In this document: positions 890-44,095 of the stretch, one piece after another
How the letters are laid out: each line of letters opens with the position of its first letter
Position numbering within the stretch: position 1 is the first letter of the stretch
Assembly (NCBI GenBank): GCA_964035545.1
Contig: OZ037773.1
Location: 7,469,751-7,533,750, forward strand
Length of the DNA: 64,000 bases
DNA from: Bugula neritina
Lineage: Eukaryota; Animalia; Bryozoa
Reading direction: 5' to 3'
Notes under the pieces: generated by a model
The model's input: only the letters and a program-made list of their open reading frames with translations
Told to the model about the DNA's origin: nothing
The model's database searches: none
Program-made: the position numbers and the translations under genes

Positions 890-1190
890 TCAAATGTAGA
901 GATATAACTTACCAACATAATAGTACAACGAAGTACTAAAGCTTATACTCTTTGGACTAGAAGAAATTGATGGTCGAGAATAAAAATTGACAAAATGATC
1001 AAAAAGATTAGCAACACTGTAGTTACTTTTAACGTATCTTAGCAAATATATACTATAGTAAAGCTATAATCCAAAGCTATTTTCTGCTATTTCTTTTGCT
1101 ATATTATAGAGTCTACAATGTCTAGCTTATAGCTATTATTGTAAAAATAGCTTCACAAATGATGATATATATTATACAGATGATATAACT
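890..1190 (-). pseudogene. Decayed signal-peptide-exon region of the CSab peptide family (paralogous to 2645-2930)
   Basis: Phase-1-type donor TTG/gtaag at ~912 with the same intron start context as family members (compare 10061-10100). The hydrophobic codons lack an ATG. About 300 bp is visibly similar to 2645-2930. Confidence 0.3.
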
Positions 1191-1770
1191 AGGCCATAGA
1201 TAATATTATCATGCTTTTACTGATATAAAAAGAAAAAATATGTCACAAAGATATTTTACATTTCAATTAGTCACTTGAGGTGTTCGCTGTGACACATTGG
1301 CCAATGAAACTTGCACCCCTACCTTATCTGCAGTTTCCATTCTGTCCTGCTCATGTAGTGGGGCTATGGAACTTGTATAATATGTTGAGATGTTTCAACT
1401 GCCATAAATTTGTACTTTACAATTATTTTAGTTTATTATTACATTTAAAATGTAAAACTTTCAAAGACTTAGTATTTTTTATTCTAATTTTTCAACCCTC
1501 TTACTGAAATGCATTACTTGTCTGACCACTAAACCATAGATAGCCAACTAACACAGGTCTCTTTTCACTTTATGCCAGTGTGATGACTTCTGCCTTTACA
1601 CAGAATAGAACTGCAGAACTCCAACATGCAAGCCATTACAAATCATTACACTACAGGGGGAGGGGGGGGGGCTACTGGGAAACTATTGCATCGCAATCAA
1701 CATCTATGCATACCAAACCTTTCTGATTGAATTTTATAGTGTGCTGTTATAATTTATATGCATATTGGAG

Positions 1771-1950
1771 AGCAGCTGTAACCAAGGAGTTAGAGCATTG
1801 GCTCAATAAACACGAAATCATGGCTGGTTCGAACTCAGACAAAGGCCATTGGTGATGTTAGAAAGAGCATCTAGTCATAATTGCTCCTGTGCCTCATTAG
1901 AATATTAATGTCTTTAGTCTGCTTTAACAAAAACCTCTTCCTATAAACTT
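1771..1950 (+). mobile_element. tRNA-derived SINE, family 1
   Basis: tRNA-like head with B box GGTTCGAACTC, followed by the core CATTGGTGATGTTAGAAAGAGCATCTAGTCATAATTGCTCCTGTGC, which recurs on the minus strand at ~41250-41390. Confidence 0.7.
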
Positions 1951-2229
1951 CTGTAGGCTTTTTTTAAATTTATATGCATAGGTATATTGAGCATAAATTT
2001 GAGCCTTGGGTTATCCATTCGTATTGCAATCCATATAATTTGTGTTTATTAACCATTCATATTTTTTAAATTACAATTCTAAACTTTATTGATTCAATAT
2101 AAAATATCAACAAATTACACTAAAGTGATTTCTAAATAACCAAGTGTTACCATAACGAAAGCATGCATTGTATAAAATGCAGTTAGTAGTGAGTTGAAAT
2201 GTGATAGATCCACTTAAATAATCTCAGCT

Positions 2230-2710
2230 ATAATAATCCCCATTGGATGAACCAGGTGATAAATTGCAGTCTTATAAGCCATATGGCAATCGAGTTAAGT
2301 CTTTGCTGGGGTTCCCAGGCCAGTGCAGCTTTTTCAATATGGGTGGTGTTGGGGTCACCCGAAGTCATCATCAAAATAGACTGCAAAATTTCAAATACCA
2401 AGCTGCATTCCAAAATGCATAAAGATTTGATAAGCTTCATAATTTTACGAACATAAACTAAAAATTGCCTTGTTTAATATTATTTTAGCTGAAGAAAAAT
2501 ATTGTGGTAGCACATGTTTAGTTAGGTATATTATAAGATAAAAGGGGAATCTGGGAAAACTGAGGTAAAAACCTGTCATCAAATTTGTCTCTCAATTATT
2601 CTTGAATAATAATTTACTAACCTTCTGTAAAATTCTGGAATTTATGTAAATGTAGAGCTAAAGCTCACCAACATATTCACGTGGGATGCTATAGCTTGTC
2701 TTTTATTCTA
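2230..2710 (-). pseudogene. Decayed CSab/defensin-like gene
   Basis: Donor TG/gtgag at ~2668 and acceptor tttgcag at 2381. The phase-1 frame reads VYFDDDFG*PQHHPY*KSCTGLG..., with TGA at the two positions where the gene at 16458 has C-x6-C (SGCPQTVSKC). A further stop and a frameshift follow. Confidence 0.45.
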
Positions 2711-3227
2711 CCAAAAATAATTTAATGGATTTTTAAAATTAAAAAATACTAGCAGCACTGTTGCTACCTTTAACAGCTTAATAAATATATACTGGTAAAG
2801 CTATAACGTAGTGCTTTTTCTATGTTAGTGTCTACAATGACTAGCTTATAGTATGCTATTGTAAAAATAGCTTCACAAATCTTGCTGCAGTTAATATAGA
2901 TACGGTTATCATGCTTTCAAGGCTATGAAAATTATAGATATGTCTCACCCTTTTATATGCTGACCTGATTAAGCTGTTTTAGACTTGTATATTAACTTAC
3001 ATTTCTAGTTTATTATTATATACATCCATTGCTTTATTCTCTAACACGTACCTAAAATTTACTTTAGTGAATTAACTATAAATTTGTATCTCTCAGCTAG
3101 GTAAGCAAATATACTCCAGTTGTATTCAAATACATAAATTGCTTTATTTTCCAAGAAACACGTATTTCTGTAAATACAGACTTTGTAACTCCCAGAAATA
3201 TATGATACATAAACTGGCAGTCATTTC

Positions 3228-3643
3228 TTAATAATCTTCTTCAGTTTTAAAGCATGTACAGACTGAGAGAGTAAAGAGAGGCATTGAGTATCCTTTCCTC
3301 TTACAGTGTCTCCTGCACACACTTTTCTTTGTTGTGAATAGTAAAGCCTCCGCAGTCGAAGCTATATATTGAAAATAAATACTAGATATTTATCTGCAGC
3401 ATGAAAGCAAAATAGCATAATATCATATCATTCATGTGACTTTTTCGAAAAAGATAATGCAAAAATGGCAGCAATGTTAATAAAAATGCTTCAAAATGCA
3501 TTTTTTATAGTTTAATTTTATGATGTGGTACTGTGTAAACATAAACTGTATATTTTATTGTTGACATGAGAAAAACAAACTTTCTATTTACCCAATGAAA
3601 TGATGACAATGATTACAGTTACTAGTAAAGCAAGAAACTTCAT
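3228..3643 (-). CDS. Secreted CSab (defensin-like) peptide A, 4 Cys, 61 aa
   Basis: Exons 3643-3592 (MKFLALLVTVIIVIISL) and 3361-3228 (ASTAEALLFTTKKSVCRRHCKRKGYSMPLFTLSVCTCFKTEEDY*), joined by a canonical GT-AG phase-1 intron. Upstream non-coding exon donor at ~3929, TATA at ~3991-3997, CCAAT at 4037-4041. Confidence 0.85.
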
Positions 3644-3798
3644 AATGTATCTTCGGTCTACAAATATTCAAGAAAACATATTATATTTAGTCAGTTTATT
3701 GAAATGTTGCATACATGTGAATGAATTTTTATCATGTTTTGTCGACTATATTTATATATGTTTAAAAATAAGTTAACAAACAAAAATAACAAGTTAAT

Positions 3799-3817
3799 TT
3801 ATATATATATATATATA

Positions 3818-3883
<66 letters not shown>
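3799..3883. repeat. (TA)n microsatellite in intron 1 of peptide gene A
   Basis: Dinucleotide run seen directly. Confidence 0.95.
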
Positions 3884-3885
<2 letters not shown>

Positions 3886-5537
3886 TTTTTACATACTGAT
3901 TGACATTGAAAACGCATTTAGTTTCTTACCTGGCGTTAAACAGTGTTGAAGATACACGGTCTGAATAATATTAAAACACTTCCACTTATGTTATATATAT
4001 CTTTTGATTTTGATTATTTTATGCAGCTTTTAGTTGATTGGTCAATAGCTAGACTAACAAAGAGATGAAAAACAAGCATAAAAACTTATAGTGATGAGGC
4101 ATATTATGTAGATAGATACAGGACACTATTCTCTTGATTTTGTATGTAAATATATTACTTTCTACGTATGAACTGACCAAAACGTATCAATTCTTTGGAA
4201 ATTGTTATGGCAATATAATCACTTTTATTTTAAAATAATATTTAGGAAGGAATCAGTTAAATGTTGCTATTAGTCACAATGCAATAATGTTTTGTTTGTA
4301 GAGTATCTATTGTTTAGAAAAAAAGTTGTGCATGTCTTGTCACTCACATATCACAATTGATTTGAGGGTAATTATTATAAATATCAGCTAGAACAGTAAT
4401 GATTTTTACGTGCCTACAAAACTCTAGCCTGTATAAAAAGTAAAATTATCTACACATCTACGACAAAGTATGATGAAACACTCTGAATGCAGTTTTATTT
4501 CAACAATGCAACGATGCAATGCTCTGAATATCAAAGTTAAATTATTAAAGTAATAATATGATTTTCATTTGTATTGCATGATTTTAAATAGAAGTAGTAG
4601 AATAAATGATATTCATTTGTTATTGATTTAGTTTGTTTCGAAATATGTAATAGATTGATGATATCCTACCCTAGCAAAACGACAACAAAAATACAAAAGC
4701 AAGCACATGTACTTTATTTCAATTATGGTTGGAAATTTTTATTCTAAGCATAATTATGAAAGAAATAAAAAATATACAGTAAATTTTTTAGCACCTAAAA
4801 TTTTAGTGTTTAAATAAATTTTCCTTCAATCATTCTTCATATTTCATACCTAAATAAGTTAGCCAAGGCAGCTTCTTAAAGACCTCTCAAAGTGATTGCT
4901 GTTTCAGCTAATATTTATAATAACTAAACTAAAATTAGTTGTTATCAATTGACTAAATATACAAAGCTGTTTCTAAACAATACATACTTAACTAATAAAA
5001 CAATAATGACTTGTGATTAATAGTAAGAGTTAACTTCCATTTATCAATAGCTTTGTGAAGTTAGAAATGATTATATTTCCGTAATAATTGACTTTGAATG
5101 TCGTCAGTTTATACGTAATAAGTCAAAATATTTTATCAAACTTAAAATACTGCTGCCCTGTAGCTATATAGTACACCTTAACTGATTTAGATGCATGATT
5201 TTTCAGTATTCTTTAACGTCAGTCGACCTATTAACCAATCAACAGAATGCTCTGTGTAATAATTCAAAACAAAAAATACACAAAGTAGAAAATTTTCTGC
5301 TATTTATAAGTGTGTGTTTATAGTTTACAAGTTTACAGGTTTACAAGTTTTGTCTTTAATATAAAAGTCAAAACATTATAAGCATCATATCTTAAAATTC
5401 AATTAAATTTATACAAAATACAGTTTTACACATGTTCATTAATTTTTCTGCTTGTTCTACTGGTATTGTTTCATTAAAATAGTATGATCATATGGTTTTT
5501 CGAAATAGGTTCATATGTTCATAACAAATTTTAACAG

Positions 5538-5677
5538 CTACAATGGCAAAGGCTTAGAGATTCACATCAAAAGAAAGTGTGTGCAAGAGGCATTGTGATA
5601 AGACTGGGCATTCAAAACATAGCTTGTTTCTTGAATTCTAAAAATGTTTTCACACTGAAGAAGATTGTTTGACTTAA
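5538..5677 (+). pseudogene. Pseudo mature-peptide exon of the A/G (TEEDY) subfamily
   Basis: After the cag acceptor the phase-1 frame reads ATMAKA*RFTSKESVCKRHCDKTGHSKHSLFLEF*KCFHTEEDCLT*. It is colinear with gene G (18592) but has two in-frame stops, one replacing the first Cys of CxC. Confidence 0.85.
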
Positions 5678-6426
5678 AAATTGATTGCTGTAGCTTCTTG
5701 GAGATTACAAAGTTTGTATTCACTAAAATATTTTTCGACGTTATAAATGCTTCCTAAAAATAAAGCAACTAACTTATTTGAAAAACTTTTCACCTGAGTG
5801 ACATGATCACATTATACACACGCACACGCTCTTGCAATGCAATTTTTAAATGAGCTTTTGGATGTGCTTCAGTGCTTATAATCAAGTGAAAACTTAATTT
5901 CTTATTATCAGTAACATTGATGTTCAAGAATGCTGTTTATATATTATGTATATCAGTTTTTTTAATGAACCAGTTATAGTGACTCTAGTATTATTATATT
6001 ATATTTTTAGTTAATTGGAATTTACGTGCATCTTACAAAGTGCAGGGTGGGCGTTGTTTTACAACCAAGTTTAAATTTAGAGAAGATCAATAACACAATT
6101 GAGCTAAAGTTTCCAAACAATATAACAATATAAACTATTTGCATAGTGTATAGTGTAATATAGTGCACAAAATTCTTTGAAATACTTACTAATCAAACAC
6201 ATATATTGCAATCAGTTATTCCGTTTTATACCCTAAAACTCTAAATTGTCGCTATAATATATAGTATTGAATGATGATGCTAAAAATTGTTAAATGAATA
6301 ATTACTCATTTTATTACAGAAAACCTACAAGCATTACAAAATATTTTTGAAAATGTTCTAGAGGCAAAAACTTTTGAAGAAACTAGGATATTATACATTC
6401 GAAACTATCAAAAATGAATTTCAGTT

Positions 6427-6988
6427 TTAAGAAAGATATCTTATGTCTTGGTTGATACAGCGGCAACGTCCATCTGAGTATCTGTACTGAGTGTAACGCT
6501 TCTTGGTACAGTCAGAAGCGCATTTCCTTAATCCAGACCATCTGGGACAATGAGCTTTCACCACTGTAACTTTGAAAGTAATATTACTGATAATATATAA
6601 ATGCCAAACATTAGAATAAAATAATATTGTTGCTTCTGTGTTTGAGTAAATCAGCTTGATGGATATGAAGCATGTGGAATTAGTATCAAAACCCATAGAT
6701 ACTATTTTTATATGTTATCTAAGAGTTAAGCTTAAAATTTCAAGCTAATATTTATATCAGCGTAAAGTTCTATTTTATTATGATATAATATTATGTTATA
6801 TATAAAAATATATATAAGTATATAATTGCATGCAATGAGTATATTTAATAATAGCTAAAACTATCACTATTTTAATAAATATATGTAAACACAATAAATT
6901 ACTTTATGCCATTTGTATTTTTGAATGATTTTAACTCACTCAATGTGCTGGTGACCATCAAACAGATAAGGACAGGCAGGAATTTCAT
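6427..6988 (-). CDS. Secreted CSab peptide B, 5 Cys in mature region, ~63 aa
   Basis: Exons 6988-6940 (MKFLPVLICLMVTSTL) and 6569-6427 (alternative in-frame acceptor at 6563): TVVKAHCPRWSGLRKCASDCTKKRYTQYRYSDGRCRCINQDIRYLS*. Non-coding exon donor at ~7366, TATATAAA at 7440-7447. Confidence 0.85.
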
Positions 6989-9483
6989 ATTAATTTCTTT
7001 ATCTACAAACTTATATATAGTCAAAGATTATTTTAATGCTGCAGATTAAATCATGCTTTATGCACATAGCGAGAGTTGGTTATAATTTAAAAGAAAGTTA
7101 ATAGCAAATTTATAATCACCTCGAAATTTATTTTCTCGATGTTTATTTTATAGTCAACTTAATGAAGAAGAAAAGCTTTTATTATGCATATATGGCTACA
7201 CTAGATTCCATGTTTTACCAAGTTTTAACTAAGCCATTATTTTAAAAAACACATCCAATAGGCATTCGATCTATTTTGAATCTTCAAACTAGATACTATA
7301 ACTTCGTAAAGATACAAAATAATAAAATAAACTGAATAAAAAACATGATTCTATAACCGGACTTACCTGTATGTATTTTTTACAGTTGCTAGTAATGAGG
7401 GTATAAATGCTAGTGCAGTGGAGTAGACACAATTGAAGCTTTATATAGTCTTTTCAAAGATATATGTTGTCAGTTGGCTAATTCCTTTCAGGTGTGTCAT
7501 GAGGTGTAGACATTCAATGTCCTAATAAAACCTTATATTAAATTAGAACAGCTGTGTGCTTTAATATAATGCTTTTTTCATTGTTTTAATACTGCATGTA
7601 TATTGAATATGTATAAAAATGCAATATTGAATCACTTTAAAATTTCGGCTCATTTTGTGTCAACAGTATTTATTTAAAAATAATCAAAATTTGTGTACAC
7701 ACTCAAAACGAATACCAATAGAAATGTCATAATTTTAACAAATAAGTTTGCCTGTTTTTGAATCATGTAGCTACAGTAATTTAAAGAAGCCTTTTTTATA
7801 CTATGCCCATAAAAAAACATTAGCCTACTTCCCAGTTTATAATCGTTTTGGAGATGTGTTTTATAAGGGCATTGTCGACCAAATCTCATATATATAGGGA
7901 TTAGTCACACAACACAATATTTTATATAGATCTCTTGCAATACCTTTGCCTATCAACTTATAGGTGATATGGATAATCTAGAAAAATAAACATGAATCTT
8001 GGATTATATGACTAGAGTAGACTAAATTTACTTTAATCACAATTTTCTGTATAGCTAGGCTACTATAAAAACATTACCCGGCCTACAACAAAATTTTATC
8101 ATAAAACAGATAATGTATTATTACATTGATATAGAAATTCAGTTAACTTGAGTTGAAATAACGGACTATATTGCAAGTATTGTTTACGTCGTTGTGCAAT
8201 AAATAAGCGATAACCATGACCTATAGTTGGGTTTTTTAAATATAAATTAACAAACAAGCTGCAAAATTATTCCCATGTTTTTAGAAGTTTTAATGTTGTA
8301 AAAGCACTTGGTAGTCTGTTTAGAAGAGAGAATGCCGATAAGAGGGAAAGCGACAAATTTTTACCAACTATTCTATATCGCAAACTGAATTATATGTGTA
8401 TTTGAAAACAAAAACCAATGCAAAAATAATTCTCTTAGAATCAAACAGCTGAAAGGGTTAAAAATACTCCATTATGTTCTTTTATAATAAATGACAAAAG
8501 CATTTCAGTCAACATTCTATAACATCCAAATTAATAACTCAAACAAAATAAATGTTTTATACAACATTTTCTTTAATTTTTCAAAATAATATATTATCGT
8601 CACATGTGTCAAATGAAGATCGGTTACAAAAATATCTTACAATTTGAATGCTTTATCATATTATAGCTTATATTATAAACTATATAATGTAATAGTTTTT
8701 CTAGGGCCAACATCTTCACAATCACAACAACTGTGCAGTATATATAGTTTGCAAATTATTCTATTGAATATACAAGCTTTTCAGGTTTTTCAGACATAGC
8801 AGTTTATCAAAAAAAAAATAATTCAATGCATGATAAATATTACTTAGCTACATGTTTTGTGGAGTTTATGATTGAGTCAACAATTAAAATTAAATGTGTT
8901 TTTAGATGTGTACTAATTCAGGGCTTATAATAAGTGAAAACTTAATTTTTATTATCAGCAACATTGATGTTCAAGAATGCTGTTTATATATTAGATTAGT
9001 TTTTTAAGGAACCAGTTATAGTGAATCTAGTATTAATTATTATATATTTTTAGTTGACTAGAATTTGTATGCATTTTACCAAGTGCAGGGTGGGCATTGT
9101 TTTACAATCAAGTTTAAATTTAGAAAAGATCTTAATAACACAATTTAGCTAAAATTTCCAAACTATCAAACAAACGATTTGAACATTTTGTTTGATAGAG
9201 ACATTTGCGAGTGTATATAGTGCACAAAATTCTTTGAAATATTAATTTTAAAAATAAAGCGGATAATTATATATCAATTAGGCATTTGGTTTACCCTAAC
9301 TCAAAATTGTCACTATATAGTATTGAATAAGGATGCTGAAAATTGGTAAATGAATAATTACTCATTTTATTTTAGAAAACATACAAGCATTACAAAATAG
9401 TTTTGAAAATTTTCTAGAGGCGAAAAACTTTTGAAGACACTATAATGTTATACATTCAAAACTATGAAGAATAGATTCCAGTT

Positions 9484-10142
9484 TTAAGAATTAAGATGTG
9501 CTACGTCAAGGCTCCTGCAGCGGCATCGCCCGTCTAAGTATCTGTACTGAGCATGGCGTTTTGTAATGGCGCATTTAGCAGCGCATTTCTTTAATCTAGA
9601 CCAGCTGAAACAAGGAGCTTTCACCACTGTAGCTTTGAAAGTATAAATATTACTGATCATAATTGACAAACATTAAAAATTAGAGAGATGTTGTTGCTTC
9701 TGTGTTTGAGTAAATCAGTTAGATGGATATGAAGTATGAGCAATTAGTATCAAAACACAGAAACTATTTTTTGTATATTATCTATGTAACAGTTAAGCTT
9801 AAAGTTTCAAGCTAATATTTATATCACCGTGAAATTCTATTATGTTAAAATACAATATTATGTTATATATAATATATATATATAAATAATTGCATGCAAT
9901 GAGTAAATTAATATAATTATAGTTGAAAAAAGATCACTATATTTTCATATATTTTCATAATTTCATAAAAGTTATTTCCTGCCATCTGTAGTAGGAAAGA
10001 ATAAGGCAGTTGTGCAAGAGGGTTGGGTTGTCCTGCATGTGATGGTGGCATTGCATACATATAATTGTAAATGTAGTTTTTATAGCTCACCCAATGTACT
10101 GCATGTGACCATCAAACAGATAAAGACAGCCAGAAATTTCAT
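9484..10142 (-). CDS. Secreted CSab peptide C, 5 Cys in mature region, ~66 aa
   Basis: Exons 10142-10091 (MKFLAVFICLMVTCSTL) and 9632-9484 (ATVVKAPCFSWSRLKKCAAKCAITKRHAQYRYLDGRCRCRSLDVAHLNS*). Non-coding exon donor at ~10492, TATATAAA at 10564-10571. Confidence 0.85.
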
Positions 10143-10687
10143 AACAACTTCCATTATCTACAAACTTACAGTTAAAGATTATTTTAATGCAGATTCATGC
10201 TGACACATAGAAAGAGTTAGTTTCAAAAATTATTATCGTCATTTAAAATGAAGTCATTTGCAAATTAATTTATCTTCTTGATGTATGATTTATAGTTAAC
10301 TTATTGACTAAAAAATCTTTTATACTGCATATGACTGCTACTCATTGCTATGATTTACAAAGTTTCAACTAACCCATTCTATTTAAACCACAAATGATAG
10401 GCATACTATGTTGAATTTTAAAGGTAATTTTTTAACTTCATAACGGTATAAAACAAATGAAAGTAAAAACATGTTTCCAGAACCGGACTTACCTGTAGAT
10501 ATCTTTTACAGTTGCCGGTAGTGAGGGTATAAATGCTAGTGCAGTGAAATTAACACTGAGACCTTTATATATAGATGTATGTTATCAGTTGGCTAATTAT
10601 TTAAAGGTGTGTCACGAGTTATGAGCATACAATGTTCTAATAAAAAATCATTAAATAAGAGCAGCTGTGCCATTTAATATAATGCTA

Positions 10688-10790
10688 CTTCCATTGTGGT
10701 GTAATGGCTAGTGCACCTGCTTGCAAGCCGGAGGTCTTTGGTTTGAAAATTGGTGGGAGAAGAAGTTTTATATAGTGTTCTTCCCTGGTT
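10688..10790 (+). mobile_element. tRNA-derived SINE fragment, family 2
   Basis: A-box-like TGGTGTAATGG, TTGCAAG anticodon-like loop and degenerate GGTTTGAA B box. A related copy lies on the minus strand at ~20950-21055. It sits at the edge of the B/C duplication. Confidence 0.55.
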
Positions 10791-11284
10791 ACAAAATTTA
10801 GCACTATGCAAAGTTGATCGTAGACTACAAGTAGCTAAACTTGTAATATAAATCACACAACCTAAAGCTACTTTTACTCCATATGTGAGGTCTGAAAATG
10901 CAGTTGCTTCAAAAAAGTTGTACGTGGGTAGCCAATCAGATCTAATGTTCCAAGTTGTTGTTAATCATTGCATGAATGATTTATAAATTTTACCATTCAT
11001 ACATAAACCTTCAATTTGGTTAAATTGTTAAAATTATAGAATGATACTTATTCTCAATGTAAATAAACTAGGGAATGAAAAGATTGAGAGAAATCATGTC
11101 GTAGTAAAGTATTTTTATTTTCAGCTATGACAATTGATCTTATATAGAGCTCATAGAAATTTAATCTTGCCATTTAATAAGTTTAAGTATGTATTGTTTG
11201 GGGAACTAAATTATATAGTGGCTTAGTCAGTAACTACTTACCCTTTATTCATGCTTACCGTGTTGTACGCCGTAACAGCAAAGA

Positions 11285-11618
11285 TCAGCCATTTTTACAA
11301 ATTTTACAAATTTTACAAATTAAAAAACTCCACGCCGCCTTCACTGAAGCTATTAAACAATGACTAGCTAAAAACTTTATATAACTTATTGTGAACAAAA
11401 GGATATTGCAATAGATGCTGTTAATAATTATCATACTAAGAAATTAACTTCTTAACGATACAGTTAGAACTTGGATTTGATGCTTATATTTTATTGAAAT
11501 TAAATTAAATGTGTAAATATAAAGTATATTTTATAATTAAAATGATATATAATATTTTCTACTTACCTAATGAAGTTATGGAAACAATAGCTGTTACCAA
11601 CAAAGCAAGAAACTTCCT
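11285..11618 (-). pseudogene. Pseudogene of the A/G subfamily: start codon lost and mature exon disrupted
   Basis: Signal exon ~11618-11567 reads (AGG in place of ATG)KFLALLVTAIVSITSL G/gtaag. Acceptor at 11350 gives ASVKA, then unrelated sequence (WSFLICKICKICKNG*). Intron similarity to gene G. Confidence 0.75.
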
Positions 11619-12813
11619 ATTGACTTTGTGGTCTACAGGCATTTAGTGGAGTAAATTATTTGCTGAAAGCTTGCTGAAATATTGTACAGAAATAAGTTCA
11701 TTACTAATTTTTTGAAGCAAATTAAAAAAATATACCGTATATATGCAAAACAATTACAGCTGAATCCATGGTATACTCAAAAACATTTTTTTAGTAGTTC
11801 AAACTGTAGTGACTTAAGCAAAGGTGCAAAAAGAAATTTAGTTTCTTACTCACACTACAGCTATTATATATATACAGTATATATATACAGTATATATATA
11901 TATATATATATATATTATATGGTTCATATTACTTAATTTAGTACACAATGTACATCTCTAGTTTTTTGATTGTTTTTTCACAGTTTGGCTGCTAATGTAT
12001 ATAGTTTTTTAATTAAACTGATAAAATATCAACAAATACAACCGAACTAGCAAGTTTTTTTTCTCATTATTTTTGATTGTCTGTGTTTTATTCTAATTGT
12101 TTAGTAACATTGGGTGGGTAGTGAGATAAACAAGCGTAATATGATATTACTGAACTAAATTATATGCCTTTGAACAGTCAGAGTAAATGCTGAAAAATGC
12201 ACAATAGGAATAAAAGCTTTTGAGACTTGTTTGATGACTTTAACTTTTTTATGACATTTTAGAAAGCATAAAACTAATTTAACAAAAAAAATAAAAATCT
12301 TTTCCCAAAACGAGATACAACAAGAAAAGACTTTTTTATCAAAATGTATTGTTTTTTGCTACTCTCTCAACAAATTTTTTATTTAGTAATACTTTAATGC
12401 CTGTTGATGAATTTTAGATGCATTCCTTTTTATTTACTCTATTATTATTGGCAGCTTGAAATTATCTCACAATTATAATTTCTTCAAATCATGAGGGCCA
12501 GAATTGCATGATAATAAAACTTAGCATAATCACAAAACGGTGAATATATTTCAAAACTAAATTTAGCTATAATTTATGAAAAAACATACTAAAGCCATCA
12601 TTAAATAGCTTTATTTATAAGCATAAAGATAGACTAAAGAATAAGGCGCTTGTGTTCATATTGCATTGAATTTTATTGTGGAAAGCATGAAAACTACACA
12701 GAAAATAATCAACATCATAACTAATAATTTAAATTTACTTAAATGACTAAAAATTTTGTTAATTATAGCAGTGAGAAAGTCATGTTTAGGACAAGGTTAG
12801 ACAGTTTAGAACT

Positions 12814-13187
12814 TTAGTGGTGCTTCTTGTAACCCTTCTTGTGGCATTTGCATACTTTACAGTTCTGCTTGTTGGAATTCTTGTCTCTGCAAAACTTTTT
12901 GCAGCCGTCCTTCTTATCAGGACATTTATCATGAGCAGCTAGAAAATACAATTCAGCCTCATAACTTTGACAGCGTATTATTAATAAGAATCGCAGGATG
13001 ATTAATTGTGTAACCAGTTTATATATATAAGCTCTAAGTTTGAGGCTATAAATAAGAACTATGGATCACACATTTCCTTATAATTTGAATAAAAAAGTCT
13101 TTTAATCATGTATTTCAGAAGAATTTTCAACTTACCCAATGCGCTGATGATCAACATGGCAAAGATAAGTATAGCAAGAACCTTCAT
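12814..13187 (-). CDS. Secreted Lys-rich CSab defensin-like peptide E, 6 Cys, 58 aa
   Basis: Exons 13187-13136 (MKVLAILIFAMLIISAL) and 12938-12814 (AAHDKCPDKKDGCKKFCRDKNSNKQNCKVCKCHKKGYKKHH*). Non-coding exon donor at ~13448. Confidence 0.88.
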
Positions 13188-13522
13188 ACTGAACTTGTTT
13201 CTAAAAAGTAACAGTTGAATATTATAAATATGTGTCACTTCTAAATATGACATTTATATTTACTTAAAAATATTTTTCTAGTTAATTTTAAAAATCACAC
13301 CTGTTTTAAAATTATTCTTACGCAGTTTGTTTTCTCTGTACAATTGCATGCCATTACATAGTTATTTGCTGCTACTATTATACAAAATATCATATATATA
13401 TTTGTAAGAAAAAGAATTAAATTAGCTTCAATGTTATAAGTAGCTTACCTATTGTTTTGTTCACTGTGGCAATCAGTTGTCAGAAAATGAACACAATTGC
13501 TGTAAGAGTGTAAGCTGGTGCA

Positions 13523-13588
13523 TTTATATACAATTTTCAATCCAATTCTGTGCCAATGCAAACTATTGAGCAGCGACAATTTGATTGG
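13523..13588 (-). promoter_or_regulatory. TATA box (TATATAAA 13523-13530) and CCAAT box (13584-13588) of peptide gene E
   Basis: Both motifs lie just upstream of the non-coding first exon, with spacing similar to genes A and F. Confidence 0.55.
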
Positions 13589-14524
13589 CTAACAACTGCC
13601 AACCACAAAACACAATTGCTTCAAGTTCTATTTATAACTTTAGTATATTCTATTTATAAACAGTTTTACTCTTTAATTTAGTGCTTTGATTGTGACTGAG
13701 TAGACTAATTGTCACCAAATAATTATTATTGTCAGATTTTCTCAGTTCTGCAAATAAAAGCTGACTCTAAAAAAACGTAGCACAAGAAATGTGCATATGA
13801 AAGCTGTATTATGCGTATAGTTGCATTGTGACTGGCTGAAACATGCATGTAACGATGCAAATTAGTTTTCAGTGGTGCATTCGGTATAATTATGATATAT
13901 TTCAGGCTTTACTGAGCATGTTCTCTGAATGCGATAAAGAAAGTTTTATTACATAATTTTTGTATTAATATAAAAAGTTGGCAAACAAATCACATTTATA
14001 TAAATCGATTTTTGATATTTGTACATCTCTGCAAATTATTTCTATACTTTGCAGTATAAATTGTGATTAAAATCCAAAATAAATAAATTTAAAAAATATA
14101 AATTATAGTGGTTCTGACATTCAACATTACAATTTTTTTCAGATCCAGTCTGTAATTAGTTCACTTGTCAAAATATGTTTAGTATTAGATTTTTGCAATA
14201 ATTTCAGATGCTGATTATCACAAAACTTTAAGTTCTTTTGAAATTCGCCAAACAAATATATAGACATTGCTATATTAACAATTTGCTAACTTAGTTGGAA
14301 ATATTAATTGATAGTTTATCTTTAGTTACAAAATAATAAACCCATATGTGTCGTTTTGAAAAAAAGATTAGAACACTTTTTTACCAATCACAATATAATG
14401 GATTATAAACTTATGATTAGGCACTAAACCCATTATTTTTCAATACAGATTAACTAAATATTTATTTTAGTAAATGATGTTGTAGTAAAACTCCATGATA
14501 TGCTAGATAAACAGTATAGTCTAG

Positions 14525-14670
14525 AAAAAGCAGCCTCATTTACAAAGAGTTACTGATGAGTGCAACAGCATGCAGTATGCAGTTAAGGTAAGTAAAAAAG
14601 ACAGCTTTCAAATTTGGTTCTTATGCTTGCAGGTGCATCTACGGGTAACAAAGCACCCTATGACAGGTGT
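14525..14670 (+). pseudogene. Decayed CSab mature-exon relic (ACRC subfamily)
   Basis: Reads ...SATACSMQLR*VKKTAFKFGSYACRCIYG*. Nucleotide match TCT.ATGCTTGCAGGTGC...GGTAACAA...ACCCTA to 20475-20530 (minus). Confidence 0.5.
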
Positions 14671-15691
14671 CGCAAGTCTTCTATAAAGGTAGATATGATC
14701 ATCAACAGATGCATATTTTTGTGGATTAGGATTAAAAACAGGTGACTTAATGTCATGTTTATCTTCCCATGAATGATATTTTCAGCTTCGTAGAAATTTT
14801 GTTAAGTTGTTTTAATGTAGTTATAGCTATAAATATGCAAAATATCAATTCTTGTTCAAAAACCAAAAAAAGGCAAACTTGTGAAGTCAAGAAACCATGG
14901 CTAAATTAAATATGAAAATATATATTTTATTGTACTACTTCTTTTTATAATCAGTATACATGGAGAAACAGTCTCATTAATTTGCAATGAATAAAGGACT
15001 TAGATACGCCACCCTATTGTTAAATGTTGATATAAATCACAAAATGGCCATCAACAAATGCTTGCATGATAATTCTGCACCAATTAATTTACCATTGCAA
15101 TCATTTTGATTCGGTTGGTTATAACATCCACTTATTATATATTGCGGAACAATATTTTTTATACTACTACTTTATTTAAAACCAGTATATATATATATAT
15201 AATATGAGGACAACCCCATTTCCTTGCAATTATAAAGGAACTTAGATTTACATTTTCATTGTTTAAATTTGGTATACAATACAAACTGATGATCGATAAA
15301 ATGTATATGCTTATAACTTGTAATCAGTAATTTATTTAGATAAATTTTGAGCCATATTATAATAATGAGGAAATGAAGATTGTATATCCGTGTCATTTCC
15401 ACACATTTTATAGAGGTTAGTATTTAACCATATCAGCTGCGACTATGCATATGGCTGATCTACCCTCAACTGACTTAAAACATTTACCTGGATATTTAAA
15501 AAATGACAAGAGCCTTGTAACAATTACTTTAAACACTGCAGCAAAAACTGAAAATCCACCTTCAGTAGGTCTAATATACCATCAGCTTTTATTAAAGTAC
15601 TAATGAAAACAAGTATAACGCAATTTTTTTATGACAGGAAAACTTTTTAAGGACAATAGAATTATAACTTCTTACTTTTGGCATTTATTAG

Positions 15692-15829
15692 CCAATTAAC
15701 AGGACACTTCAAAATACTAAAGTCTATAAAATTTGAGTAAGAATAGTATATAAAGGTTCTAGTTTCTTTTCTACTTCATGGCAATATAACTCCAGCTTCT
15801 AATAACTTCAATAAACACTCGCAGGTAAG
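15692..15829 (+). promoter_or_regulatory. CCAAT (15692), TATA (15747-15754) and non-coding exon 1 of peptide gene F
   Basis: TATATAAA followed about 70 bp later by a CAG/gtaag donor; same layout as other family members. Confidence 0.55.
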
Positions 15830-16371
15830 AACTGTTAGGTAAATGTGTTATTTCAATTCAATACATATTATATACATGTAGGTAATCACGCAATTGAAGA
15901 TTTAATTAAACATTTAACATATTATTTTGACACTTGATAACTGGTTTTCAATAATAATTAGACCACAAACTTTATAGATTTAGAAAAAAAAACTATTGTG
16001 TATTGGAAGGGGTTTTCATCAACAAAATTATCATGTCTAAGAAACAAACCTAACTTTTCTCAAATTTAATTAATTTCATATATTAGAAAGCTGGCGCTTA
16101 AAATTAAATTTAAAAGCTGTGTAATAAACTAAGAGACTTTTTTATCAAAAATATTCATGCATATTGAAATTACCAGCTGTAAAGCTACTAATATTTAAAG
16201 TAATATTAGCCTAAGCAGTTTTGTTGAAATATTTAGGAATGCATGTAATTATATGTTTTCATAAGCATATATTATTATTATCTAATATATATTATTATAT
16301 AATATATATTATTATATAATATAAAAATATTATTATGTTCTGTTATAACTGACAACTCTTATGTGTGCGTG

Positions 16372-16444
16372 AGTATAAATTTGTGTATCTAAAATATTTA
16401 AGTATAAATTTGTGTATCTAAAATATTTAAGTATAAATTTGTAG
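16372..16444. repeat. 29-bp tandem repeat (~2.5 copies) ending at the splice acceptor of gene F
   Basis: AGTATAAATTTGTGTATCTAAAATATTTA x2, then AGTATAAATTTGTAG. Confidence 0.85.
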
Positions 16445-16457
16445 AAACAAATCCAGT

Positions 16458-16916
16458 ATGAAGGTTGTTGTGGCGCTTATGTTTGTTATGATGGTCACCA
16501 GCACAATGGGTAAGTTGGAAATAATTCAGAAACACATATTATTTTAATAATAAAATCAAATTTTGTATTCATTATGCATCTTTTTAAATATTATAGAAAC
16601 AATACAATTATATTAGCAATGAATATTAAGTTTTAAATGTAATAATTTACAAAAATAATTTTGTATATAAGACTCTATCTTACTTGCATGTGTACACTAT
16701 TATGCCATTGTAACACAATTTAGCTGCATAGAAATTTATTTATTAAGTATATTATCATATACTATATTTTTAGCTTTAGCATTTAGGTATAATTCTGGAT
16801 GCCCTCAGACAGTCTCGAAGTGCAAGCAGTTTTGTATAAACAGAAACTTTCCTGAGTACAAATGTCAAAACAGATGGTGCAAATGTGACAAAAATCGGAA
16901 TATAATAGCAACATAA
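16458..16916 (+). CDS. Secreted CSab defensin/scorpion-toxin-like peptide F, 6 Cys, 64 aa
   Basis: Exons 16458-16509 (MKVVVALMFVMMVTSTM) and 16774-16916 (ALAFRYNSGCPQTVSKCKQFCINRNFPEYKCQNRWCKCDKNRNIIAT*). Canonical C-x6-C-x3-C-x9-C-x4-C-x-C array; AATAAA at ~17064. Confidence 0.9.
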
Positions 16917-17439
16917 GTTCTTAAATGTTGACATTTAACCTGAGAATAAGTCTGCTCCCCATTCCACATCATTTCAATAATTTCATCGAATTTATACAGT
17001 TGAGATACTTATGAGATTACTTATGCTGTAATTTTTTATCATGCAATTCTTTTGTTTGTCCACAATAAAAGCAGGAAACTATATAGTTGTCATTGCGCTA
17101 ATTTATTTGTTTGAACTTTTTTGCAAAAAAATACTGTCTGATTGTGCCTAAAAGCTTTTTGGTCTAAAAGTGGCTGTATTAATATATGAGACTGAGAAGT
17201 GCACCTCACAGTAAATGTTATTCACTTCCATTTGATAGAAAGTGAGAGCAATTTACTATTTTGTGAATAACATGTTTGTCATTGCATTAAGAATTTCTGT
17301 GAATAAACTATAAAGTAGCATAACTCCAATATTATTTTCAGTACACCAGAATAAGAAATATGACTAAAGTTATCAAATCAAAATTGAATACTAGTGAATA
17401 AAACAACCAACAAGAAATATATAATATATATAGACCCAA

Positions 17440-18374
17440 GGACTAAACTATATTCGAAATGTTTTTGAACATAAAAATGGTTATACCCTAAATATGTATA
17501 ATAGAGAAAACTATTAACAATATTGGTGACGGACTACTCAGTGAAAAAGACAACAGGAAACACATTTTACTTCAACTGCCTTATAAAGGAGTAACAGGAG
17601 AAAACCTAATCTGCTCCCTCAATAAATTAATTACAGACTCTTTTCCAAATGAACTCAATGCCCGGATTATATTTAAAAGAACCCCCTTAAGTTCACATTT
17701 TAATCTCAAAGATAAAACCAATAAAGAACACATACACAACCTAGTCTACAAAATAACCTGCCCTGAAGCTATACCTGTCAACAAACATATGTAGGCGAAA
17801 CTGGACGTCGCCTATCACACAGGATACATGAACATTGCCATGACATCAATTCCAAAATTTATCAACACATCTCCACCACTAAACACGGAAACGTATCAAT
17901 AGACAATGTAACAGTTCTAAATCATTCATTTAAAGGAATCCACCATCGAAAAGTAGCCGAAGCTCTCTACATTAAACAAATAAAACCGCAACTTAATAAA
18001 CAAAATTACTCCATACCACTAAAACTATACCAATAAGCTCCACACTACACAACTCTTACATAGTTTCACTAATCCTTGCTATTTTTTTATATTTGGATAT
18101 CTATTTTTTGTCAATTCTAATTTTTTTTATGCAAAAATCAGTATAATTTTTGACATGCGTAATATATAAATTCAGATTATCTCCCTCAGTTTCAATAATT
18201 TATAATAACTGCCACTCTCTATTCTTTGTGTCAAGCTGCATAGTGTCTAAAGTAACGTAATAATTTTTGAATTTCATTCATTGCTACTCTGAAGATGGGT
18301 ACAACGTGGTACCCGAAATATCAGTATAATTACTTTGCCTAATAAAGTAATAATCAACAATGTTTCTCGTATAC

Positions 18375-18375
<1 letters not shown>
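17440..18375 (+). mobile_element. 5'-truncated Penelope-like retroelement (GIY-YIG endonuclease end plus 3' tail)
   Basis: Translates LQLPYKG...LSSHFNLKDK...NLVYKITCP / frameshift / CQQTYVGETGRRLSHRIHEH...IYQH...RKVAEALYIKQIKPQLNKQ...* (stop at 18034-18036). These are motifs typical of PLE GIY-YIG domains. The tail contains a hammerhead motif and ends at a TA microsatellite. Confidence 0.88.
18285..18326 (+). ncRNA. Minimal type I hammerhead ribozyme (PLE-associated)
   Basis: TACT-CTGAAGA-T-GGGTAC-AACGTG-GTACCC-GAAA-T-ATC-AGTA: stem I TACT/AGTA, CUGANGA and GAAA boxes, 6-bp stem II, loop-less palindromic stem III (ATAT) and cleavage triplet AUC. Confidence 0.8.
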
Positions 18376-18420
<45 letters not shown>

Positions 18421-18591
18421 ATATATATAATATATGCTGCTCTATAGTAATGGCACACTCTAGTTTTTTAAAACTCATGAATAAATTTATTGTCTAAGAA
18501 ACAGGTAATACATATATATTATATAATATTATTTAGGATAAACTTTGTAATGCGCAAAAATATAATTCAGCAGCATTTTTACATCAATGAG

Positions 18592-19060
18592 TCAACAATT
18601 TGTATAATAATCTTCTTCTGTTTTGAAGCATTTGCACACAGTGAGAAACAAGCTATGCTTTGAGCGCCCCATACTATCACAATGTTTCCGGCATACACTC
18701 CCAGATGTGGTGAAACGGAAGGCTTCTGCCATAGAAGCTATTAACAAAATAATGTACTGAATATATACCAACAAGATATTTCATGTCTATCCATATTGTT
18801 TCTTTGTGACAAAGAAATATTGCAAGAAATAGAAGTAGTAATAATAAACATATCTAGAAATTTATTTGATATAGGCAAAATTAAATTTTGGATTAGATTC
18901 TTATGGTTTCATTAAACAATTTATTGTCAAAATGGGACCTAGTAACATATGGGAATGTAAAAAATATTTTATTATTATTGACATAATATAAAATAGTTAT
19001 CTACTTACTCAATGATGTTATTGTGATAATGGCAGTTACAAATAAAGAAAGTAATTTCAT
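18592..19060 (-). CDS. Secreted CSab peptide G, 4 core Cys plus C-terminal Cys, 65 aa
   Basis: Exons 19060-19009 (MKLLSLFVTAIITITSL) and 18737-18592 (TSMAEAFRFTTSGSVCRKHCDSMGRSKHSLFLTVCKCFKTEEDYYTNC*). Non-coding exon donor at ~19377; paralogue of A. Confidence 0.85.
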
Positions 19061-20062
19061 CTTGAATCTGTGATCTACAAGCATTCAACTAAATAGATTA
19101 ATTTTTGAAAACGTGTTGAAATTTTGTGAACATGTGCAGAAGAAAGTTGGAACTTTGATCATTGAATATTTATATAGTCATTGCAAAATAAAGAAATAAA
19201 ACAGTATATGTATTACTATATGTAATAATTTTTTTGCTTTGTTTAATGGCCAAACAAAATTTCTATAATCATGTTAAACTTATCAAAAACCATAATTGAG
19301 CCTGCATGTAATATTAAACATTAATCATTTAAATTAACAATGTAGCCCAAGGAAAAATTATACGTTTAGTTTCTTACCTAGTTTATGTTCAGTAGTGCAT
19401 ACGAGTTGTTGTAGTAAAGATTATATACACATTGGGTATTGATAAAATAACTTCTGCGTTTAAATAGTTTTTGGTCTGAATTATTACATATGTAGCTTTC
19501 AATTGCTTGGTTAACCACTCTATAAGAATGGTAATAAAAATAATGATTATCTATATAATAAAATTTATTTAACTAACTTTTTTGCTGGTCTTCAAAATTT
19601 TATTGCCATAAAGCATTTAGTTCTCTAAACTTCAGAATTATATAATTTTATATAATGCAACAGTCACATGTCTTTGCGGAAGAAGGTTTGCACAATCCAC
19701 CAGGTGATTTACATTGTACAATAATTTTTGAATTATTCAAAGTAATATATGACCACATGTCCTAAATAAAGGTCAACTGAAAAATAAAAAATAATCTCAT
19801 AAAAATAATGCTTTATTATATGTATATAATATATTATATATTATAATATAATCATACCAGGATTAACACTATTACAATTCTTATAATGCTTATAATAATA
19901 GTGTTGCATGGAAAACACATGTTATTGCATTTTAACGTTCAGTCTCTTTTTAGAGCTGTAATACTATATGCTAACAATTAAACCTTCAAACTCTGCAATC
20001 ATTTGAAATAAATGCACATATAGCAAATCAAGATGCAAATTTTAAATTGATTATCATTATAT

Positions 20063-20155
20063 TACTTACTTTACCGACTTACTTAAACTGACTTACTTAA
20101 CTGACTTACTTAACCGACTTAACTTAATTAACATAACTTGATAACTTAACTGACT
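20063..20155. repeat. Degenerate ~13-14-bp minisatellite (GACTTACTTAA(A/C)C)
   Basis: Repeated ACTTACTTAA units seen directly. Confidence 0.7.
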
Positions 20156-20500
20156 AATTGTTAATCATTTTAGGCCCTGCGCTTTCACTAGCCTCTGCTA
20201 TGGCGCACCATTGGGCCTCATCATTACCTCCTTTGGGTGATCCCTTGTATTTTTTTTTAATTTTATGTATATATGTATATATACATTAATGAAAATAAAC
20301 AAACAAATATTGCTTTAATAAACTTTAAGCAATATATTTTACGATGTTCTGTTATATGTACTCTAAAAACATTTTTTACTTTAAACATCATATATGGTAT
20401 GTTTTTGATCTTAATCTGCAAAAGCATACAGCTGTTGATGATAATTATTATATCTACTTTCACAAAATATTTTTGACACATGTTGTAGGGTAGGTAGTTG

Positions 20501-20649
20501 TTACCTGTGGCACCTGCAAGCATTAGAACTCACTTTCAACACTGTATTTTTGCACCTATAACATTAGCTCTGTATTCCTGAGCCCGTACTTCTATTTGGT
20601 ATCACTCATTGCTCCAACGAAACACTTTCCTCAGCAAGTTGCACCGAAG
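20501..20649 (-). pseudogene. Decayed CSab mature exon (ACRC subfamily)
   Basis: The acceptor appears mutated (tatataa/CTTCG versus tatatag/CTTCG in gene A). Frame reads SVQLAEESVSLEQ*VIPNRSTGSGIQS*CYRCKNTVLKVSSNACRCHR*; paralogous to 14525-14670. Confidence 0.55.
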
Positions 20650-20949
20650 TTATATATTTCTCCCTAACATCTCAATACTAATCCAAATTTGAAACAATAT
20701 TTTAATTTTATTTAACTGAATTTTGAATTCATGCTGATTTATTGCAAATATCTCGATTATTTTTATATTTTACTTGATTGCATTTTGAGATCATGCAAAA
20801 ACTTTGTTCAAAGATTATATTTTTAAGATGATGCTTTTATAGACAATGCAGAGAGGTGAAACTTAACTTCTCACTTAAACAAAATGGAAATTCTGAATAA
20901 AACAAACCAAATTTATCAACAAAGCCTAATTTATGGTAAAAAAATTAGC

Positions 20950-21055
20950 TGAAGGGAGATTTGGGGTTCAATATAAGAACTGGGATTCAAACCGAGACCT
21001 CTGGCTAATTGCAAGCATGCAAAGGTGCGCTTATGGCCATAACACGACAGGGACT
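20950..21055 (-). mobile_element. tRNA-derived SINE fragment, family 2
   Basis: Reverse complement GTCCCTGTCGTGTTATGG...GCTTGCAA...GAGGTCTCGGTTTGAATCCC, similar to 10688-10790. Confidence 0.55.
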
Positions 21056-22325
21056 ACTGCATGGCTAAACGCAACGTACTATAACTAAGCAAAAAATATG
21101 CATATCAATCACTGTTTAACTCGAGTATTTTTACTCTGATCACATAAAACAAAGTTTTTTAGAAGCTAAAGTTTTCAAAAAGTGACAAATTCAGACGCTC
21201 ACCAAAGTATTACTTACATAAATATAGCATAGGTCAAACGCTATTTCTAAATTTATTCAACACGTTTACAATATATTGAAATGATTTCTATTGCAAGTTC
21301 ATTTACTGGTTTGACTTGAATATATAGCAATAAACACTCTTTTTTCTTACACAGTTGCATTGTCTTCATCATGCTTTATTTAAGGGCATTGTCCACCACA
21401 TGTCTCCAATGTGAAGATTAGAAATCAATAGTTTAAAGGCAATATATCATAGGTTATCTAGCAACATACTGAAATCAAACCTAGGTATGCATCATATAAT
21501 CACAAGTTAGGTTCCCTGGCTATGTAATATCTTGCATTATTTATAGCTTTATAAGTTTTTTAAACTTTAGGAAACTGATAAAAGCACTATTTGATAGGTC
21601 GATTACCATTGGGATTAGTCATTCATCTCTATTATTAAAAACCATAGAGGTGATGTACCTTTATTCTTGCTATATGTCACTATAATATCTGTAAATTGCT
21701 AACATTTAATGAAATATGACATCTAATAAATTTTTATATGTATGCAATGCAACATAATGGAATCCAATATTTTGGTTGAAAAGCATTTGACATGACGTAT
21801 TTACGCATTATCATTTGATTTAAGTTTATCGTAGCTTCCATCAATATATTGTTGGATATTCAGTTAAATGGAACAAACTGAATAAAAATCATGAGGAGTT
21901 GGTGTTAGGTTAATATAACAATTTCCTGATGTATAGGTAGCTGTTAGTCAATAAACTTAAAGTCACTAGTTATAGGCCTATATAAGTGATGGATGTGTAT
22001 CAATTGACCAAAACCACAAAGCAAGTAAAAATTTACAAGTATTTCTACTTATTTATACATAAAATACTAATACTAATTACACAAATACTGATTAGGTTAT
22101 ATAGTTTAATAGGTTTAGCAATGCTGAATAGCTTTTATAACAATTTATGTTACATATAAAGCATATAAATGTATATTAAATGAGTGTAAAATCATTTAAA
22201 ATAACAATTAGTCAGTGCTCAGGAATGTGACTAATTTATATACTATTTGTTGTCTTTCAAATTTAACAGCCTACCGTCACGAGAGAATCTACAATCTGTG
22301 TGCAATATAAAGAAACAAATTGAAG

Positions 22326-22813
22326 ATGAACATTGTGGCGTTACTGTTAATTGCCCTGGCTTCTTTCTGTACATTGGGTAAGTTAAATGCCTTATTTATA
22401 TGTTTCGCTGATCATTAAATGTTTTTTATATTCAGGTTTTTAACAAGTTTTGTATTTAATAGTATTAAAATATCTAAGAAAAATAGCATAGCAGAAAACT
22501 TACACTTTTTTAGCTGAGTTATGCATAAAAAAAAGTTATTATAGAAGTAATATTATCAATTGAACACTTGTATTTGCAATATTGTATGTTTACTAACTAT
22601 TAAATATTTGAATAAATTTAAACATGCAATAGTATATGTATGTATATATTGCATTGATGTTGCTGAAATAATTTCACTGTTTTGTACAATTTTCAAACAG
22701 CATCGGCTGCAACTGGCTTCCAACTAAAATGCATAGCAAAGTGCGCAAAGAAAAAGCGTTATGGCTATTCTATGTATGAAAGTATCTGTGTATGTGTTCC
22801 ACTTCCAGGATGA
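22326..22813 (+). CDS. Secreted CSab peptide H, 4 Cys, 54 aa, C-terminal Gly
   Basis: Exons 22326-22377 (MNIVALLLIALASFCTL) and 22701-22813 (ASAATGFQLKCIAKCAKKKRYGYSMYESICVCVPLPG*); GT-AG phase-1 intron. Confidence 0.85.

Positions 22814-23894: not shown

Positions 23895-24426
<532 letters not shown>

Positions 24427-24730: not shown

Positions 24731-44095
<19,365 letters not shown>

Follow-up and report, generated by a model that had tools for sequence, protein, structure and literature searches.

Introduction

In plants, fungi and invertebrates, no scaffold for host defence and toxins is more widespread than that of peptides with the cysteine-stabilised alpha/beta (CSalpha/beta, cis-defensin) fold. 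Here we analyse a stretch of 64,000 nucleotides (nt) of DNA from the bryozoan Bugula neritina (assembly GCA_964035545.1, contig OZ037773.1, positions 7,469,751 to 7,533,750), referred to below as the window, in which seven intact two-exon micro-genes (g1 to g7) and two decayed copies (psi-1 and psi-2) make up a cluster of nine loci spanning 3.2-22.8 kb. We conclude that the seven are real genes under constraint, for the most part missing from annotation, and that they belong to a new family of bryozoan peptides with the CSalpha/beta fold.

Among described systems, the arthropod defensins (Anopheles defensin, coprisin and insect defensin A) are the best profile matches of the family in the PDB, with E-values from 6e-4 to 0.15. 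They share with it a CxxxC motif on the helix, a CxC motif on the last strand, a cationic character, a length of ~40 residues and, as predicted for the family, secretion. The peptides of the window differ from them in scoring below the Defensin_2 cut-off, in having a short first loop and in their bryozoan host, and only g4 and g5 encode six cysteines. Scorpion alpha-KTx toxins give the best TM-scores for the predicted structure of g6 (0.70), and discrepin matches the family profile at E 0.011, but the Toxin_2 score found in the window is below threshold and the family has no known venom context. The nasonins of Nasonia vitripennis resemble the family in being multi-copy and lineage-specific, in lacking a propeptide, in their short first loop and in the phase-1 intron that follows the signal (PMC2853521). 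Nasonin-1 has three disulfides (PMC2853521), whereas in five of the seven bryozoan genes the encoded chain can form two at the most. Sequence similarity between nasonins and the family is not significant, the profile match to nasonin-1 having an E-value of 0.42. Plant defensins and defensin-like (DEFL) peptides share the strand-helix-strand-strand topology and are the top Foldseek matches of the g5 model. The genes of the plant DEFL peptides, like those described here, consist of two exons with an intron where the signal ends, and form clustered arrays that are often missed by annotation. Plant defensins have eight cysteines, however, and come from another kingdom, and the Gamma-thionin score of the family is sub-threshold. 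In mussels, which are lophotrochozoans, cysteine-rich peptide families such as MgCRP-I have a signal region that is conserved and a mature peptide that is hypervariable (PMC4558851). The cysteine pattern and fold class of that family are different, and the two systems are likened by description.

Gene structure and paralogue divergence

A six-frame scan for stop-free exons with the pattern CxxxC-x(6-25)-CxC returned seven family-like exons, all at 3.2-22.8 kb, compared to 0.24 per shuffled window, and only microsatellite artefacts and unrelated cysteine-rich exons in the remainder of the window. Searched as a frame-independent DNA motif, the pattern gave 10 merged matches in the first 24 kb, where 1.2 were expected. 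Every one of the seven motif exons has an upstream partner on the same strand, found with a signal-exon scan for ATG-started hydrophobic peptides that end in a phase-1 GT donor; this first exon is 52 nt long (49 nt in g2). An in-phase AG acceptor after a T-rich tract is present in all seven exon pairs, giving GT-AG phase-1 introns of 197-464 nt. The predicted precursors measure 54-66 residues, 36-48 of which belong to the mature part, and the genes lie on both strands. The initial annotation of this DNA had described seven intact precursors of this size on both strands, each with a 49- or 52-nt signal exon, a phase-1 intron and a single CxxxC...CxC exon, and the same count and structure were found here in full. 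It had also read the phase-1 intron at the signal end as a feature common in the defensin and toxin superfamily; the intron is indeed present in 7/7 genes, but introns of this kind are general in genes for secreted proteins and are not evidence of common descent (PMC5308243).

The first gene, g1 (3228-3643, minus strand), comprises exon 1 at 3592-3643 (52 nt), an intron of 230 nt and exon 2 at 3228-3361 including the stop, and encodes 61 residues with four cysteines in the mature exon. It is followed on the same strand by g2 (6427-6988; exon 1 6940-6988, 49 nt; exon 2 6427-6569, alternative acceptor 6563; 63 or 61 residues) and g3 (9484-10142; exon 1 10091-10142; exon 2 9484-9632, alternative acceptor 9626; 66 or 64 residues), which are tandem duplicates with five cysteines each, and by g4 (12814-13187; exon 1 13136-13187; exon 2 12814-12938; 58 residues), with six cysteines and a net charge of +10. 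On the plus strand, g5 (16458-16916; exon 1 16458-16509; exon 2 16774-16916, alternative acceptor 16780; 64 or 62 residues) has six cysteines in canonical spacing. The minus-strand gene g6 (18592-19060; exon 1 19009-19060; exon 2 18592-18737; 65 residues) encodes four cysteines plus a C-terminal one and an acidic C-terminal tail, which is also seen in g1, and g7 (22326-22813, plus strand; exon 1 22326-22377; exon 2 22701-22813; 54 residues) encodes four. The two acceptors of g2, g3 and g5 are 6 nt apart and indistinguishable in this analysis.

When aligned, the seven mature exons share four invariant cysteines, arranged as CxxxC and CxC, and little else (mean column identity 38%). Between the two motifs lie 13-15 residues (12 in g4), and all mature exons are basic, with net charges of +2 to +10. 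By similarity they fall into subgroup A (g1, g6, psi-1 and psi-2), subgroup B (g2 and g3) and subgroup C (g4 and g5), with g7 as a singleton. Both cysteines of the third disulfide, the first and fourth of six, occur in g4 and g5 alone; in g2 and g3 the first is there without its partner, and g1, g6 and g7 have neither. Exon-1 regions, taken with ~40 nt on each side, are 56-85% identical in nucleotides among paralogues and exon 2 49-74%, and a single exon-1 DNA profile recovers all seven genes at E-values of 1e-22 to 1e-29. The youngest paralogue pair, g2 and g3, has a synonymous divergence (dS) of about 0.4, near the between-species value, and a ratio of non-synonymous to synonymous divergence (dN/dS) of 0.64 in the mature exons compared to 0.15 in the signal exons, a difference that fits relaxed or diversifying change of the mature exons after duplication.

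The sequence upstream of the start codons holds a further regularity. In an alignment of 12 exon-1 regions that includes the equivalents from the second Bugula neritina assembly described below, 11 keep an AG ~17 nt 5' of the ATG, after a T-rich run and at a near-fixed distance to the ATG. In the window the corresponding regions are 3644-3683, 6989-7028, 10143-10182, 13188-13227 and 19061-19100 on the minus strand and 16418-16457 and 22286-22325 on the plus strand. From its sequence context, this AG looks like the acceptor of an intron in the 5' untranslated region, as is present in some scorpion genes of the CSalpha/beta fold (PMC5308243).

Predicted fold and kinship

All searches and structure models were run on single exons. 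The AlphaFold2 model of g6 exon 2, built from an alignment of 8 rows, has a mean predicted local distance difference test score (pLDDT) of 84.1 and consists of a strand at residues 6-8, a helix at 12-21, strands at 26-30 and 33-37 and a short C-terminal helix. That of g5 exon 2 (7 rows, mean pLDDT 69.5) has a strand at 3-5, a helix at 13-22 and strands at 27-31 and 34-38. C15 and C19 of g6 lie in helix 12-21 and C34 and C36 in strand 33-37; in g5, C16 and C20 lie in helix 13-22 and C35 and C37 in strand 34-38. The predicted topology is hence strand-helix-strand-strand, the helix bearing the CxxxC and the last strand the CxC, in keeping with the earlier recognition of these motifs as those of the CSalpha/beta fold. 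Foldseek comparison with the PDB returned mainly plant defensins and scorpion alpha-KTx toxins as top matches; the best for the g6 model were kaliotoxin and noxiustoxin (root-mean-square deviation 1.7-2.0), and OSK1 and BmKTX were also found.

A profile of the seven mature exons matched 20 entries in the PDB, all of them peptides of the CSalpha/beta fold, among them an Anopheles defensin variant (E 6e-4), coprisin (7e-4), the discrepin and nasonin-1 mentioned above and several alpha-KTx toxins. In an exhaustive search of 1.84 billion representative proteins, the family profile gave two matches only: KAF6033949.1 of Bugula neritina (E 8.5e-12) and, as the sole non-bryozoan match, a moth protein with several domains and a length of 568 residues (Diatraea saccharalis; E 3.6e-6), which passes Pfam Defensin-like, Toxin_2 and Gamma-thionin. 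On the strength of the models and profile matches we would, with good confidence, place the family in the CSalpha/beta structural class, but in no named sequence family.

Conservation between lineages and selection

A second assembly of Bugula neritina, which represents the type S sibling species (PMC7576161), contains a contig, VXIV02001196.1, that is collinear with the window from 30272 to 13061 at 76-83% nucleotide identity. An identity no higher than this sets the window apart from type S itself, as DNA of a related bugulid, and the collinearity rules out a scorpion, Hydra or mollusc as its source. The contig carries orthologues of g7 (6843-7366, minus strand), g6 and g5 (12619-13092, minus strand), and, at its end, of exon 1 of g4 (17619-17670), with order and orientation relative to a neighbouring PAN-domain gene preserved. 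The g6 orthologue is KAF6033949.1, recorded as 'hypothetical protein EB796_007746'; its gene model joins the signal and mature parts at a donor and an acceptor homologous to those of g6, and has an extra 24-residue N-terminal extension from an upstream exon outside the family pattern. The Bugula neritina annotation was made using AUGUSTUS with transcriptome hints (PMC7576161), and it includes one of at least four family loci on this contig, the g6 orthologue only. The expectation that automated annotation would probably miss the family is borne out by this count. Two-exon micro-genes of this kind escape gene callers, and the single locus that was caught has an odd N-terminal extension.

The mature exons of the three complete orthologue pairs (g5, g6 and g7) differ by 25.5 synonymous and 17.5 non-synonymous changes, giving a dN/dS of 0.13 (0.10-0.14 for single pairs). 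The synonymous share of 0.59 compares with a neutral expectation of 0.20 (binomial P 5e-9), and the signal exons of the same pairs have a dN/dS of 0.51. GT and AG are conserved in 3/3 pairs. The exons contain one 3-nt gap, equal to one codon, in 558 columns, whereas 10% of the columns in introns and flanks are gaps. The exons are 81-94% identical between orthologues, only slightly more than the introns (77-88%), and the signal of constraint therefore lies in the pattern of change and not in its amount. Judged from these substitutions, the retained copies are stable and under purifying selection.

With two copies dead, a single presence/absence difference between the species and one duplication of fairly recent date, birth and death proceed at a moderate pace. 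The fast turnover proposed in the initial annotation was overstated, because g4-g7 have positional orthologues that are constrained by purifying selection at ~20% divergence and only two pseudogenes were found. An extra open exon-2-like open reading frame (ORF) of subgroup A lies beside a long microsatellite at 11704-11808 (plus strand) of VXIV02001196.1; no exon 1 was found for it and it has no counterpart in the window. It is either a lineage-specific copy or a relic. A third lineage, JGI sample 3300003318, is 83% identical to the window. The same non-coding DNA differs by ~17-24% between the window, Bugula neritina type S and this sample, which is more than expected for sibling species.

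Database and literature context

A word-based protein search with KAF6033949.1 found only this protein itself, and one with g5 exon 2 found nothing. Exact look-up of the 89-residue ORF at 6427-6696 (minus strand) in protein collections gave no record, and Rfam gave no match over the whole window. A metagenome scan with the g5 orthologue alignment yielded 392 pattern matches, none of them related. Seven further metagenome loci picked up with a degenerate exon-1 DNA pattern were rejected as chance matches, having no DNA similarity to the window; one of the seven gave a marginal 25-nt match to the exon-1 profile (E 5e-4).

A search of the literature for Bugula or bryozoan defensins, cis-defensins or antimicrobial peptides found no such family, although most subscription journals were outside the search and an earlier description is possible. 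The sole related mention of bryozoans in the papers searched is a big defensin in Flustra transcriptomes (PMC7203481). As the databases contain a single hypothetical protein of the family and no description turned up in the papers searched, the suggestion that the family may be undescribed still stands. As a constrained, syntenic and nearly unannotated bugulid family, it fills a phylogenetic gap among the lophophorates.

Proposed role and alternatives

The explanation of the data as a whole that we favour, at somewhat better than an even chance, is that the cluster consists of duplicated two-exon genes for secreted, cis-defensin-like host-defence effectors. Local duplication would have generated a tandem and inverted array with seven functional genes and two decayed copies. 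Exon 1 would encode the signal peptide, with the phase-1 intron splitting the codon at the signal end, usually that of an alanine, and exon 2 a cationic peptide of 36-48 residues with a predicted strand, helix and two further strands, the CxxxC of the helix presumably being joined by disulfide bonds to the CxC on the last strand. The signal exons have stayed alike while the mature exons split into no fewer than three subgroups, and each retained copy is now held by purifying selection. Gene structure, paralogy, orthology, selective constraint and the predicted fold are results of the analysis; secretion, the pairing of the disulfides and the antimicrobial role are inferred. The peptides are probably secreted, and their most likely role would be that of antimicrobial host-defence effectors of the cis-defensin kind, a reading that follows from the structural class, the charge and the preference of the profile for insect defensins. 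The charge makes the antimicrobial or chemical-defence role put forward in the initial annotation plausible; we consider an antimicrobial role to be about evenly balanced between true and false.

Several results weigh against this explanation. The models were built on alignments of only 7-8 sequences, and the Foldseek E-values are 0.24 or higher and not significant, as expected for domains of 40 residues. None of the peptides of the window attains the gathering score of a Pfam family: the best Defensin_2 (PF01097) score is that of g1, at 15.6 bits compared to a cut-off of 20.4, and g5 reaches 13.8 bits for Toxin_2 (PF00451; cut-off 25.1) and 14.7 bits for Gamma-thionin (PF00304; cut-off 25.1), and g2 12.1 for Defensin-like (PF24552; cut-off 27). 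The third canonical disulfide is not possible in five of the seven genes, and three (g2, g3 and g6) have an odd number of cysteines. The odd cysteines are shared by g2 and g3, and likewise by g6 and its Bugula neritina orthologue, and this conservation may point to covalent pairing of chains. In addition, nothing in the present analyses tells an antimicrobial function apart from one as a toxin or signal. That the loci are real genes for secreted peptides with the CSalpha/beta fold we nonetheless regard as highly probable. A more specific picture is tentative and, in our estimate, somewhat more doubtful than not: that this would be the first cis-defensin-fold family from the phylum Bryozoa, that most members would have the two core disulfides only, that the unpaired cysteines of g2/g3 and g6 would link chains into covalent dimers, and that g4 and g5 would be convergent with, or share ancestry with, the scorpion short-toxin framework. 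The family would provide examples from nature in which the fold has two core disulfides and no third.

A view of the ORFs as products of chance in AT-rich DNA, or as dead remnants, could draw on the shortness of the exons and on the lack of records in protein collections for those ORFs and exons of the window that were searched. It is already contradicted by the ~30-fold enrichment of the motif over shuffles, by the pairing of signal exons with motif exons, and by the dN/dS of 0.13 between orthologues (P 5e-9), with no frame-breaking indels next to flanks with 10% gap columns, and we consider it extremely improbable. The peptides could instead be toxin-like molecules directed at ion channels, akin to the short K+ channel toxins of scorpions, with predators, competitors or fouling organisms, and not microbes, as the targets of a chemical defence. 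The six cysteines and short first loop of g4 and g5 would agree with this, as would the best single-sequence PDB match of g5, alpha-KTx 19.1 (E about 1), its sub-threshold Toxin_2 E-value of 0.076, the best TM-scores of the g6 model, which are to kaliotoxin, noxiustoxin, OSK1 and BmKTX, and the strongly basic nature of the peptides. The toxin matches are all non-significant, however, the profile favours insect defensins over toxins, and bryozoans are not known to possess a venom apparatus. Outside venomous animals, moreover, peptides of the CSalpha/beta fold are mostly host-defence molecules, and the short-loop, defensin-like nasonins are antibacterial (PMC2853521). A toxin role is unlikely in our judgement.

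Two further roles have been weighed against host defence. Bugula neritina has been studied for its defensive symbiosis and hosts the vertically transmitted bryostatin producer Candidatus Endobugula sertula (PMC11480708), and secreted cationic peptides are candidates for host immunity or for housing the symbiont. A family that is lineage-specific, cationic and multi-copy might manage this symbiont in the way that cysteine-rich peptides do in other symbioses, but the constraint between orthologues is compatible with any conserved role, and we hold the symbiont-directed function to be improbable. Much the same assessment applies to secreted signalling or recognition ligands, acting in fertilisation, settlement or colony recognition as some plant defensin-like peptides do: diversity among the paralogues goes together with strong conservation of each orthologue, and the conserved odd cysteines (g2/g3, and g6 with its orthologue) could serve covalent pairing, but peptides with so high a positive charge more typically act on membranes or bind channels, and such a role seems rather remote.

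Decayed copies and rejected loci

The copy psi-1 (5540-5730, plus strand) is an exon-2-like stretch of subgroup A that matches g6 by tblastn (E 6e-16) and the exon-2 profile at 5543-5674 (E 2e-10). It has two in-frame stops and keeps three of the four invariant cysteines, and no exon 1 was detected for it with the exon-1 DNA profile. Its upstream flank at 4889-5278 is an inverted duplicate of the upstream flank of g1. The copy psi-2 (11285-11650, minus strand) is an exon-1 relic of subgroup A that lacks a start codon (nhmmer E 1.7e-16 at 11545-11650) and resembles the exon-1 region of g1 (74% by blastn). By tblastn the copy was picked up at E 0.001. Downstream of the relic, a short open frame without CxC runs into low-complexity sequence; its likeness to the start of g1 exon 2 is by eye only, and the exon-2 protein profile gave no match.

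Run over the whole 64 kb, the exon-1 DNA profile found eight loci, the seven genes and 11545-11650 (minus strand), and the exon-2 protein profile, searched over six-frame translations with X at stops, likewise found eight, the seven genes and 5543-5674 (plus strand); no further locus in the 64 kb was significant with either. The initial annotation had counted at least 12 genes, including at least five pseudogenes, and the profiles reduce this to nine loci, two of them decayed. The pseudogene candidates at 2574-2653 (plus), 21351-21400 (minus), 19648-19758 (minus), 1202-1632 (plus), 14947-15015 (minus) and 23311-23408 (minus), as well as the originally proposed start of the cluster near 890-1045, were rejected, having neither an exon-1 or exon-2 profile match nor flank homology.

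Other features of the window

The window is AT-rich, with 25-36% G+C per 2-kb block, and its sequence resembles that of metazoans. Inside the cluster are short, unclassified dispersed repeats, at 14595-14740 (plus strand) and 20400-20551 (minus strand), and at 1001-1160 and 2742-2880; the first of these also matches VXIV02001196.1 twice. Long dinucleotide-type microsatellites, one TA-rich and one CA/TG-rich, are located at 23822-24511 and 33723-34176, and are the cause of spurious long ORFs and spurious cysteine-motif matches.

Adjoining the cluster is a multi-exon gene with a PAN/apple domain (~24731-32200, plus strand; PAN_1, E 6e-6), which is syntenic with a 1352-residue Bugula neritina gene model (VXIV02001196.1 1-6927, minus strand). 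This model ends at 6927, within exon 2 of the unannotated g7 orthologue (6843-6959, minus strand), and the public PAN gene model may thus have absorbed part of that orthologue. Further along, on the minus strand, thrombospondin type-1 repeat exons that are nearly identical to one another (Pfam TSP_1, E 1e-11 to 2e-15) form two arrays, at 45937-53000 and 56680-63199; the arrays represent a segmental duplication with 89-95% nucleotide identity. A Ser/Thr-rich, mucin-like exon at 37968-38315 (plus strand) lies among cysteine-rich exons with WSxW-type motifs (36.9-42.5 kb), and is probably part of another large gene for a secreted or adhesion protein.

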